Assembly: GCA_038496445.1 (NCBI GenBank)
Contig: JALMLS010000278.1
Coordinates: 1-64,000, forward strand
Source of the DNA: Trichosphaerium sp. ATCC 40318
Lineage: Eukaryota > Protista > Tubulinea
Length of the DNA: 64,000 nt
Direction of reading: 5' to 3'
The stretch's first letter is position 1; each line of letters starts with the position of its first letter. A program made the position numbers and the translations under genes. Below, piece after piece: positions 25,340-44,557 of the stretch. The notes beneath the pieces were generated by a model. That model worked only from the letters and a program-made list of their open reading frames with translations, did not search any database and was not told the DNA's origin.

Positions 25340-25483
25340 TGGTAAATACGGTGTTGACGATATCAAGGACAATCATACTGACAGGGCTGCATCTGCATAC
25401 ATTTCTTATCGTGATGCTTGGGTACCTGTTGTGTTGGCAGGAGGAGATAAGAAAAAGTTTGGTGAATAAACACAACTCAAAGC
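25340..25483 (+). pseudogene. GST gene fragment (third copy)
   Basis: GKYGVDDIKDNHTDRAASAYISYRDAWVPVVLAGGDKKKFGE* is nearly identical to 30928-31078, ending in a small deletion and a stop. Confidence 0.92.
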
Positions 25484-25529
25484 TGTTAACGTATTACAAT
25501 TTATTGTCAGAATAAGACATAGTGGGTTC

Positions 25530-27764
25530 TTAGAGCTCATTGAAATCTTCACATGTATCTTCACATTTTTCACTGCTGTTATCTTCAATATGTAACATTG
25601 GCTTGGCAGCGCTTTTAAGTTTGTTCTTGTGTTCTCGTGTGTTTGCTTTTATCTTTTCATCAGCCACTTTGTTTTCTTCCGCCTCTTTTACCATTCTTAT
25701 GATATCTTCTGAAGAAACACGACGTATTGGTGAAGTAATTGTAACTTCAGTTGCTTTATTAGTGTCCAAGTTCTCCGCTGTTACAGTCAAGATACCATTT
25801 ACTAAAACCAAACATAAGAGAACAATCAAAGTAGTACCATAAAAAGGGCGTGACAAACCGTCTACGTAAAAAGTAACTTCAATCCTTGGTTCGCCAATTG
25901 GACCTGGTGGAATTCCTTCTAATGCAAAAGTACCAACTTTGAAATTATCATGTGTCAAGGCTCGTTCTCCTTGGAAAACGTTTATCAATGCGCTATTTTG
26001 GTGAGCTTCATAAGTGGTAAAAATGAGTGATTTCTTTGTTGGTATTTGAGAGTTGCGCTCGATTATTGTTGTCATGACACCACCCACACTCTCTATACCT
26101 AGTGAAAGTGGTATAACGTCAAGGAAACAACCAATTTCTTTTGCACTCTCTTGACGTATACGCCCGGCTAGCAAAGCAGCGCTAAATAATTAAATTAGTC
26201 AGTAAAATAGCAGAAAACAAAGTACCCATAGGCCACAACTTGATCTGGATTGATACTTTGGATAGGTTTCTTATCAAAGAATTTAGTCAGTATTTGCTTG
26301 ATCTTTGGGATGTGCGTTGAACCACCAGCTAGAATTACACTTTGGATTTCATGTTTCTTCACAAGGGCATCCTGTAGTACTCGCTTAACAGGTTCCAGTG
26401 TTTTAAGGAACAGATCTTTGTTAAGTTCTTCAAAACGAGCCTATTGTGATGGTGAGCGTTTGAGGTCTGAGTGTAAAAACGCACACGTGATAAACGTTCA
26501 TCGAGGTCATCCCCATCATGGAAGGAATCAATTTGAATTTGTGTTTGGGGTGATGAAGATAGAACTTTCTTGGCACGTTCAACTTCGCTTTTCAGTTTTT
26601 GGATTGCCCTCTTGTCAGTGGATGCATCTTTACCTGTCTTTTCTTTGTATTTCTTTAAAATATACTCAATTACACGTAGATCAAAGTCTTCTCCTCCCAA
26701 GTGATTATCACCATCTGTGGCTATTACTTCAAAGAAGTCCGTGTCAATTTCAAAAACTGAAACACCAAGAGTTCCTCCACCTTTCAACATCTTAGTAAGC
26801 ACTCACCATACAAAAAGCAGTACCCAAATCAAATACTAGAACCCTTTTCGTGTTTTCTCCCGCACCTAATCCATAATATGCAAGGGCAGCAGCTGTAGGT
26901 TCATTAACGATACGTTGTACACTAAGACCAGCTATTGCACCAGCATCTATGGTGGCTTGCCTTTGCTACAAGAAGCATAAATTGTATAAGTTGCAAGTTG
27001 TGTAAGACGTACTGCATCGTTGAAATATGCCGGTACGGTAACAACTGCATGATGTACTTCCTCACCAAGGTATCTTTCAGCGATAGACTTCATATTTTGT
27101 AGAACCATGGCGGATATCTGTTCAGGAGAAAGCACCTTTGTTTCACCCTTTGATTCAACACTGATGTATGGGTAGCTGTCTTTGTTCACAATTTCAAAAG
27201 GCATCGAGGAAATTTCGTGTTGTACATGAGAGTCCCAGAATTTACGCCCAATCAAACGTTTGACATCATACACTGTGTTTCGAGGATTCAAAGATGCCTT
27301 AGAAAAAAATGAGAATCACACTGTATCTATTGAACAAAACGAGGGAATTTACTTGGGTTTTGGCTTCTTCACCCACAAGGATTTCGTCTGCATTAAAGGT
27401 CACATATGAAGGAATGATTTTATTTCCTTCTTCGTTTGCAATTATTTCAATTCGAAATTTATTAAAAATACCCACACAACTGTAACTTGTTCCCAAATCA
27501 ATACCGATTATTGGCCCTTCTACTACAGTCAGGTAAGTTTTATTGTTTACCAAAAAATGGCTCAAATAATGGCGTACGCCTGTCCATTTCATCTATTCCT
27601 TCATTGCATTTTATGATGTATGGAAAAATTAGACCTATTAGAATGGCTAGCAGACGTTTAACACTTGGTGGATTATTTGTTTGATTTAGGTTTTTACCTA
27701 TCAATAACGGGTTTAGATGCATCGTTGTACTTTGTTGTAAAGTAGCAGAAGTCAGGTAAATCAT
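25530..27764 (-). CDS. Atypical BiP/GRP78-like Hsp70, lid-truncated; start uncertain
   Basis: Hydrophobic N-terminal segment; [42 protein letters not shown]-beta present; ends shortly after helix B begins with ..CEDFNEL*. Confidence 0.9.
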
Positions 27765-28184
27765 ATTTTTCGTTATTGCCACGTCATGGTTGCGCTGTTG
27801 GCAAAAAATTCAATTAATAAAAAGCAAATAACAAGTGAAATTTCTAATAATCCGCTATTTACAGTTATAGCACACGTGCTGAATATTTCCTTTTTTTGAC
27901 CACCTGTGCGCACTAAAAGATAGCTCTACTACAGGTTATGCAAACAGACACTTATTGGCTTGTTCGAGTGTCAATGGGTTAATAATAATAGCGAGCTGAC
28001 TGAAATTACGGAGATGCCAACCGCACGTGTGACTAACGCCCTTGCACGTACGAACTCCACTTTTTTACATGAAGTATCAAGCGTTACAATATTTTTGTGG
28101 GTTTTGATACGCAAAAGCTTGGGTCGTTGTAGTTCTGATTCACATTGTTACTTTTTTTAAGTGGAAGCTCGGATCACCGTAAAT

Positions 28185-28279
28185 CTGTCAGGGTTTACCC
28201 TGTCAGTCAGGGCTGAACCCTGAGATAACCTAAATCCGACCCAGGGTAACCCTGTCTACCAGGGAGGTATCCCCTGATA
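28185..28279 (+). promoter_or_regulatory. Array of four CAGGG-N(3-7)-CCCTG palindromes upstream of the metallothionein
   Basis: 28189-28202 (N4), 28208-28222 (N5), 28242-28254 (N3), 28260-28276 (N7). The array ends ~45 bp before the ATG. Confidence 0.75.
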
Positions 28280-28320
28280 GAATTAAAATATCAACAAACT
28301 AAACGAACTAACAACACATC

Positions 28321-42892: not shown

Positions 42893-43070
42893 GTTTTGTT
42901 CGCAATAAAATAGTTCTCTTCTTTCCAATTTACATTTACGTTCAATTTACCAATCACTGAAGATAGTTAACTAGCAGATTACTTCAGGCATTTTGCTGCA
43001 CGTGTAGTTTTTAATGTTTATTCTTGATTACAGATTGTACAATGGCGAAGATGGGTTTAGTAGTGCATCT

Positions 43071-43454
43071 TTATTTACATCCGCACTTGCTTGTATCACA
43101 TGTATCACAGACACACTACGCGCGGAGTTAATTTGAAGAACCAAAAAAAAAACAGTCTCTTTTCTCTTCGCACCTTTTTACAACAATCGCAGCTGCATGT
43201 TGCTTTGCCGTCAGCGTCTTTTGAACAACAATCTGCGTTATCTAGGAACTAAAATTAGCATTTGAAAACCTTAAAGTTCAAGCGGAGAAGCTAGATCATG
43301 TCTCTTGATGTAGAACGAGTGTATACGTACCTTGGCCTTTACAGTTGGTGCAGTTAGAACAGTCCGTCTTGTAGGTGCACGACTTACAAGATTCTTTGCA
43401 ATCGCTGCAAGAAGATTGTTGTTGTTTGATTTCTGCTGAAGCGTCTGAGGACAT
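43071..43454 (-). CDS. Metallothionein, second copy (identical protein)
   Basis: Same 3 exons; one synonymous change seen (ACG/ACA); the introns differ more. Confidence 0.88.
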
Positions 43455-43498
43455 GATGTGTTGTTTGTTTGTTTAGTTTGTTGATATTTTAATTCTAT

Positions 43499-43692
43499 CA
43501 GGGGATACCTCCCTGGTAGACAGGGTTACCCTGGGTCGGATTTAGGATATCTCAGGGTTCAGCCCTGACTGACAGGGTAAACCCTGACAGATTTACGGTG
43601 CTCCAAGCTTCCAAAAAGAGTAACAATGTGATTGTAGGATTTGTCAGGGTCCCTCCCTGGTCGACAGGGAAACCCTGACAGAGTGAGCCCTG
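43499..43692 (-). promoter_or_regulatory. Expanded CAGGG-Nx-CCCTG palindrome array (6 perfect + 1 imperfect)
   Basis: Four shared units at 43499-43587, plus 43645-43659 (N5), 43665-43677 (N3) and CAGAG-tgag-CCCTG at 43679-43692. Confidence 0.75.
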
Positions 43693-44557
43693 CTTTTGCG
43701 TATCAAAGCCCATAGATTACGCTTTGATCCCTTCTTTCATGCTTTGCGTGCCGGAAGGTACTTTGTACGTACACGAAACAACTTCACAAAGGTGATAGGA
43801 AAAGCCTGAAATCGCGAAGGTTTTCGTCAGCTCCTACGCTAATTACGCACATGTGTTATGCTGCAAAGTTTCAAATGAATCTAGTAGAACTCTACGTACG
43901 TTCGTTACAATTGACACGTGTTGGGTTGGCAAATCGGAAACAAATATGCTCAAAAGCATTAGTGATGCTATGAAAACTGTTCGACTTGGAATGACTTTAG
44001 GCAAAACGCCTAAACCGAAAAAACCCATTTTGTTTGGAATTGTCTTTGGTGAGGCGCTTGTTGTATCACACCCATTGCTGCCATAGGATCTTGAACTAAC
44101 TCATTTTGGACATTGGATTTCGCATTAGTTTTTTGTTTTATTTGTCAAGCTTGTGAGACGTCTCAATTTTCCTTCACGTAGCGCATTATGTTTACAACCG
44201 TACTTGTACTGTTTAGATTAGCAGGTATTGTAGATCAGGGTAAAGCTGAAAGCTGGAATCAATTTGCTATTGATAAAACAACAATGTTACCTTTAAAGTG
44301 GAATAATGGATGGAAAAAAAAGTACAAGGTAAACGTGATAGATACATTTTTTCTACAACAGCTGTTGTAATGAAATAAACACTAAATGTACTACACTTAA
44401 CAAATACGTATATAGAGCAGTACTATCATAGTCTATTGTATCAAGATCTGTTAGTTTGCGTAAACAAACTGAGTTGTAAGATACGCAGTGAAAAACATAT
44501 TGTTTTACAGATGTTTATTTTACTTCTTTTTTACAACCTTAGTGGTATAACTACCCC

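Follow-up and report, generated by a model that had tools for sequence, protein, structure and literature searches.

Two kinds of described system lie closest to the locus reported here. In Saccharomyces cerevisiae, the metallothionein (MT) gene CUP1 occurs as a head-to-tail array that varies between strains and consists of many young, nearly identical units. The other kind comprises those inverted segmental duplications of eukaryotes that have been homogenised by interlocus conversion. The DNA analysed here, hereafter the window, is the stretch of 64,000 nucleotides at positions 1 to 64,000 of contig JALMLS010000278.1 (assembly GCA_038496445.1) of the tubulinean amoeba Trichosphaerium sp. ATCC 40318; it carries two inverted copies of a block with an MT-like gene, a glycosidase gene of the GHL15 family and a soluble glutathione S-transferase (GST) gene, accompanied by an intact Hsp70 gene and by remnants of GST and Hsp70. 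An earlier note on this DNA had read the locus as a co-regulated metal and oxidative-stress cluster, amplified in the manner of CUP1. On the evidence described below, we consider it about 80% probable that the locus is instead an old inverted segmental duplication, in which the four genes lie together by descent, their linkage being incidental. The window indeed resembles the second kind of system: two colinear inverted arms flank a unique spacer, neither gene set is disrupted, tracts of low and of high divergence form a mosaic, and a decayed partial gene lies at the end of an arm. No essential difference was noticed, the arms here being short (3.2-3.6 kb) and old (synonymous divergence, dS, up to 0.18).

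Comparison of the whole window with itself, which the earlier note had proposed and which was performed by self-BLAST and a repeat finder, returned colinear inverted matches at 28140-28760 / 43631-43011 (95.7% identity), 28882-30174 / 42909-41583 (89.6%) and 30304-31332 / 41412-40381 (93.3%). By global alignment, the left arm extends over 28155..31340 and the right arm over 40373..43616 (aligned as 43616-40373), and fainter homology can be followed by eye on to ~28070 and ~43740, respectively; the gap between the inner arm ends measures 9032 nt. The left arm ends 11-13 nt past the stop codon of the left GST, where a UvrD-like helicase gene comes next. The arms are colinear reverse-complement copies of a block of 3.2-3.6 kb, with the gene order preserved, as is characteristic of an inverted segmental duplication. 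Their overall identity is ~90-93%, with 91-100% in exons and ~56-78% in intergenic sequence, in a window of ~38% G+C on average whose genes contain short GT..AG introns. Read along the forward strand, the left side consists of a GST remnant (+), Hsp70 (-), MT (+), GHL15 (-) and GST (+), and the right side of an Hsp70 fragment (+), GST (-), GHL15 (+) and MT (-). This gene content and order had been described in the earlier note, and the self-comparison, gene models and profile matches all agreed with it.

Gene models were built from the sequence and then checked against public RNA-derived contigs from four runs, in which all nine introns of the MT, GHL15 and GST models were present as GT..AG joints, exactly where predicted. 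In the left arm, the MT-like gene (28321..28701, plus strand) has exons 28321-28444, 28533-28600 and 28657-28701, both of its introns being among those joints; the GHL15 gene (28899..30158, minus strand) has exons 30158-29560, 29453-29207 and 29159-28899 and encodes 368 amino acids; and the GST gene (30560..31329, plus strand) has exons 30560-30648, 30692-30828, 30876-31121 and 31169-31329 and encodes 210 amino acids. The right-arm copies are likewise intact and retain every splice site: MT (43071..43454, minus strand) encodes a protein identical to that of the left copy, GHL15 (41599..42892, plus strand) differs from its counterpart by 33 amino acids and one extra residue, and GST (40384..41163, minus strand) differs by 3 amino acids. 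Sites at 28576, 30937, 30970, 31040 and 31087, together with indels in the 3' untranslated region at 28705-28734, distinguish the copies. Only two intact copies each of MT, GHL15 and GST, and one of Hsp70, are found in the window. Among the listed variant bases in the RNA contigs, 31 of 40 were the right-arm base; such bases document that the right-arm GHL15 and GST genes give rise to spliced RNA, and the main, abundant MT contigs carry the indels of the right copy's 3' untranslated region. A left-type GHL15 contig (29207-29322) had a single mismatch to the left copy over a stretch in which the arms differ at ~23 sites. Transcription and splicing are thus established at least for all three right-arm genes and for the left GHL15; transcripts of the left MT and left GST were not demonstrated by these contigs, which cannot show absence.

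Divergence between the arms was quantified by per-exon Nei-Gojobori counts on complete codons only, a dN/dS comparison that had also been proposed earlier. MT showed a dS of 0.024 and a dN of 0, GST a dS of 0.055 with an omega (dN/dS) of 0.11, and GHL15 a dS of 0.18 with an omega of 0.28. Noncoding mismatch was 22% plus indels between GHL15 and GST and 12-25% in the GHL15 introns, as against 2.8% in the MT upstream region and intron 1 and 2.2% in GST introns 2 and 3; in the region between GHL15 and GST, the GST-proximal promoter is conserved between the arms but the GHL15-proximal half is not. Silent divergence is indeed heterogeneous along the arms by Fisher tests (p = 0.0025, 0.015, 1e-13, 5e-4 and 2e-6). 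Since the low divergence spans introns and promoters besides exons, it is best read as the result of patchy gene conversion added to purifying selection. Conversion between the arms would have homogenised tracts around MT (~28155-28600) and GST (~30290-31340), so that promoters and introns in these tracts differ by only ~2%, compared with 16-22% elsewhere, while ordinary purifying selection appears to have preserved both copies of each gene (omega 0.11-0.28, with no difference between the MT proteins). The claim that the spacers had diverged while MT and GST stayed near-identical, under selection or conversion, is thus supported by the dS values, the intron and promoter mismatch and the Fisher tests. 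A guide to age came from a transcript of another sample (L004), the GHL15 exons of which are 99/91/96% identical to the right copy but 97/83/92% to the left; the arms must therefore have split before the lineage of L004 did. Judged from the GHL15 dS of 0.18, the intergenic mismatch of ~22% and the orthology of L004 to the right copy only, the duplication is old and not recent.

Remnants outside the arms proper carry the history further. Positions 25337-25483 match 30925-31077 (94%) and 40784-40635 (93%), i.e., both GST copies, and 25603-25956 match 40255-39979 with 86-89% identity. The former belong to a GST pseudogene remnant (25337..25490, plus strand) that comprises no more than a portion of exon 3 and carries a 6-nt deletion; all of the gene upstream of mid-exon 3 has been lost, as have ~235 nt on the 3' side, made up of the remainder of exon 3, intron 3 and exon 4. 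The remnant adjoins one copy of a convergent GST/Hsp70 intergenic junction (25491..25529), which aligns with 40361-40310; with the stop-codon region of Hsp70 included, 25491-25530 aligns with 40361-40305, which substantiates the earlier observation that this junction occurs twice. On the right side, the arm extends beyond the stop codon of its GST: ~70 nt of intergenic sequence are followed by a 0.33-kb 3' fragment of Hsp70 (39979..40309, plus strand), which is 86-89% identical to 25603-25956, represents only the final ~0.4 kb of the gene and bears internal deletions of ~19 and ~66 nt; this fragment is a dead stub. All three pieces would be most simply derived from an ancestral MT-GHL15-GST-Hsp70 order. 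A block arranged as MT(+), GHL15/GH168-like(-), GST(+) and Hsp70(-) would have undergone at least two duplications: the right arm would be an inverted product, with MT, GHL15, GST and the now-dead Hsp70 3' stub, and a tandem-like step accompanied by deletions would have left the GST remnant and the intact Hsp70 immediately before the MT-GHL15-GST block of the left arm. The ancestral unit proposed in the earlier note, copied in tandem and then inverted, is therefore retained as regards the ancestral order and at least two events, one tandem-like and one inverted, but the order of these events is not resolvable because the remnant is only 150 nt long.

Some considerations weigh against parts of this account. 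Conversion has been deduced from heterogeneity between only two full copies, too few for a phylogenetic test, and the low silent divergence of MT and GST may be due in part to codon bias, or to constraint on promoters and short introns. The orientation of the assembly rests on the contig itself. The relatives for which genomic DNA is available, discussed below, are distant, so that an older linkage may have been lost in them. It is also to be noted that the significance of the locus beyond the annotation of this genome is slight; the gain consists of RNA-supported models for two copies each of unannotated MT-like, GH168-like and GST genes, and of a clean example of patchy gene conversion within an old inverted duplication.

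The MT-like protein has 78 amino acids, including 18 cysteines in CxC, CxxC and CC motifs and a single tyrosine as its sole aromatic residue, with a hydrophilic N-terminus and no signal peptide; the predicted product thus fits the operational definition of a metallothionein as a small, Cys-rich protein with few aromatics and no signal peptide. The gene had no Pfam match, an atlas search with its exon 1 gave sub-threshold matches only, and a literature search on amoeba metallothioneins returned nothing relevant. The two copies are inverted and ~14.4 kb apart, and each is preceded by palindromes of the form CAGGG-N(3-7)-CCCTG. Four of these (28189..28276) lie just upstream of the transcription start of the left copy, where cap-side adaptor junctions in read ends, at 28285 and 28313, fall just downstream of the palindromes. 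Six lie upstream of the right copy (43499..43677, i.e., 43499-43586 and 43645-43677), and the two at 43645-43677 sit in a ~40-nt stretch absent from the left arm. All 10 matches in the window, where 0.1 would be expected, are upstream of the two MT copies, up to ~130 nt from the start codon on the left and up to ~350 nt on the right. A scan of the whole window found none at the GHL15/GST promoter, and a scan for heat-shock elements revealed no enrichment; a cis-element common to the promoters of all member genes was likewise not found, the enriched motif being confined to the two MT copies. Hsp70 and the left MT are transcribed divergently, with the palindrome array between them. For metal regulation, this MT-specific array offers the better starting point.

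Domain searches with the window genes used single exons, and Pfam searches with those of GST, MT and GHL15 returned little; evidence over the full length came from natural spliced homologues, P0001 for GHL15 and P0024 for GST. P0001, derived from transcript L004, is a spliced ortholog of the right GHL15 copy and is 92% identical to the GHL15 exon 1 query over the covered part. It matched the Pfam family GHL15 (PF14885) over the full profile (positions 1-271; 42.7 bits against a cutoff of 27; E 8e-11), and its predicted structure (mean pLDDT, the per-residue confidence score, 72) matched the GH168 endo-1,3-fucanases in Foldseek with an E of 2e-12. A profile of the protist GHL15 family, searched against the PDB, retrieved the same solved GH168 enzymes (E 4e-8), one of which bears the name 'GHL15 protein' in the sequence results and appears as 'family 168 glycoside hydrolase' among the fold matches. 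These full-profile, profile and fold matches constitute the likeness to GH168, whereas identity to the solved enzymes is only 16-20%. With the roles of GH168 residues, both catalytic and Tyr/Asn, taken from published work (PMC12534559, PMC7401878), the Tyr/Asn motif Y-x-N (VFYLN) was found to be invariant, and the Asp of DGxFxD to be retained in 12 of 14 sequences; this Asp, aligned by profile with the 'DG-F-D' motif of GH168, is presumably the published catalytic Asp. An equivalent of the catalytic Glu was not located in this comparison. Eukaryotic homologues of GH168 have already been reported (PMC7401878). With the signal-like segment at the N-terminus of the left protein, the product looks like a secreted, polysaccharide-degrading GH168 fucanase-like enzyme rather than a stress protein. 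The GHL15 genes of the window are eukaryotic homologues of bacterial GH168 endo-fucanases, and their exon 2 contains a fast-evolving segment. One RNA contig of run X1 skips 59 nt (29322-29382) within exon 2, with CT..AC ends, and may reflect an alternative intron that breaks the reading frame, or else an artefact due to a paralogue.

Exon 4 of the window GST matches GST_C_3. The homologue P0024, of 212 amino acids and 75% identical over GST exon 3, contains both GST_C_3 and GST_C, and its whole length aligns with GST structures of the nematode, alpha, pi and sigma types. The likeness to sigma/nu/alpha/pi-type soluble GSTs is therefore that of the homologue's domains and structures, the window GST itself having been searched exon by exon only. 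In three runs, RNA contigs follow the MT mRNA for its first ~46 nt only (28313-28358), or GST exon 2 for ~40 nt (30690-30730), before diverging, one of them continuing as GKIAGRGGCV, like P0024; such contigs indicate additional paralogues of MT and GST elsewhere in the genome.

The Hsp70 gene (25530..27792, minus strand) is the only intact Hsp70 in the window: its pieces are colinear with the Pfam HSP70 profile and free of disabling lesions, so that the gene is apparently intact, though divergent. Its 5' exons, 27792-27698 and 27646-27578, are documented by RNA contigs and encode a hydrophobic, signal-peptide-like N-terminus. The earlier designation of the product as an ER Hsp70 is plausible in view of this N-terminal exon, the xxEL type of C-terminus, and an ATPase-domain exon that scored best with yeast Kar2. 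It is unlike BiP/Kar2, however, in ending in FNEL and not in the canonical K/HDEL and in a substrate-binding exon that scored better against cytosolic Hsp70, and a word search of a large protein collection revealed no close ortholog, the best identity being ~50%. Because of these differences, the product is regarded as a divergent Hsp70 paralogue and not as the canonical BiP.

The products and promoters so described bear directly on the reading of the locus as a co-regulated cassette for metal, oxidative and ER stress, its dosage raised by repeated amplification as with CUP1, which we hold to be improbable. MT, GST and Hsp70 do belong to stress-associated families, but the fourth member of the group is the secreted GH168 fucanase-like glycosidase. 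The divergent arrangement of Hsp70 and the left MT around the palindrome array speaks for the cassette, but the palindromes are absent from the GHL15/GST promoter. The near-identity in which the MT and GST duplicates have been kept would suit such a cassette, whereas Hsp70 is single-copy and its duplicate was left to decay. In the RNA contigs, the word depth of MT was far above that of its neighbours, MT, GHL15 and GST were all present and Hsp70 appeared as a trace only; contig depth, however, is not suited to ranking genes. The linkage itself, the absence of which in relatives the earlier note had named beforehand, together with a lack of co-induction, as grounds for an incidental duplication, was looked for at loci of GHL15 homologues in three or four relatives. 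No GST, Hsp70, MT or Cys-rich open reading frame was found beside these homologues at loci L001 and L002 or on the P0003 and P0005 contigs; the neighbours were tandem GHL15 copies or unrelated genes, in relatives as distant as 53-65% identity. Locus L001 (10001-14383 on a 1.85-Mb contig of a relative) contains three tandem GHL15 copies, and the TARA marine contig L002 contains one. As for amplification, the likeness to CUP1 lies in an MT-type gene present in more than one copy along with passenger genes. The window differs in that its copies are two, inverted, old and diverged; no head-to-tail array is present, the only tandem hint being the GST remnant, and in place of young, near-identical units there are arms with a GHL15 dS of 0.18 and 22% intergenic mismatch that predate the split from L004. 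Thus, neither the co-regulated stress cluster nor the CUP1-like amplification was borne out. On the favoured reading of an old duplication, keeping two MT copies may raise dosage. There is a distinctly slim chance that the locus is nevertheless a functional island, in which the palindrome-driven MT, the GST and the divergent Hsp70 with its signal peptide respond jointly to metal or oxidative stress and conversion keeps the arms alike so that they can flip the 9-kb spacer or buffer the dosage of MT and GST.

A related proposal, that the arms serve as a recombination substrate which flips the spacer of ~8.6-9 kb, giving an inversion polymorphism or a switch, also seems very doubtful. The arms are 3.2 kb long and inverted, with tracts 97-100% identical over 0.45-1 kb, and the putative conversion tracts would imply that the arms pair; their overall identity, however, is just ~90-93%, and a flip would leave the structure of every gene unchanged because neither arm ends within a spacer gene. 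An assembly artefact, by which haplotypes or paralogues were mis-joined, would be the least expected explanation, with scarcely any probability. The joins are those of the contig itself, but the arms differ by 7% in the GHL15 exons and by more in the spacers and so are not collapsed or duplicated reads; moreover, one sample contains transcripts of both arm versions, and the right arm has its own Hsp70 stub and extra palindromes. Given the divergence between the arms and the transcripts from each, an artefact was rejected in favour of the old inverted segmental duplication.

The unique spacer between the arms (31341..39978) contains a UvrD-like helicase gene (~31463-34741, minus strand), a potato-inhibitor-I gene (35098-35301, minus strand) and an RGS-domain gene (38469-38957, plus strand). 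The second of these is a single-exon open reading frame of 67 amino acids with a full-profile match (E 3e-22) to this family of serine-protease inhibitors. Directly left of the GST remnant, an exon on the minus strand (25013-25249) encodes a DNA-binding domain of the fungal Zn(2)-Cys(6) binuclear cluster type (E 2e-11). The same window also contains a younger segmental duplication, a direct repeat of ~2.65 kb (689-3337 / 7173-9834) with 98.5% identity between copies 6.5 kb apart, and an open reading frame at the start of its second copy (7144-7635) matches Glyco_transf_61.

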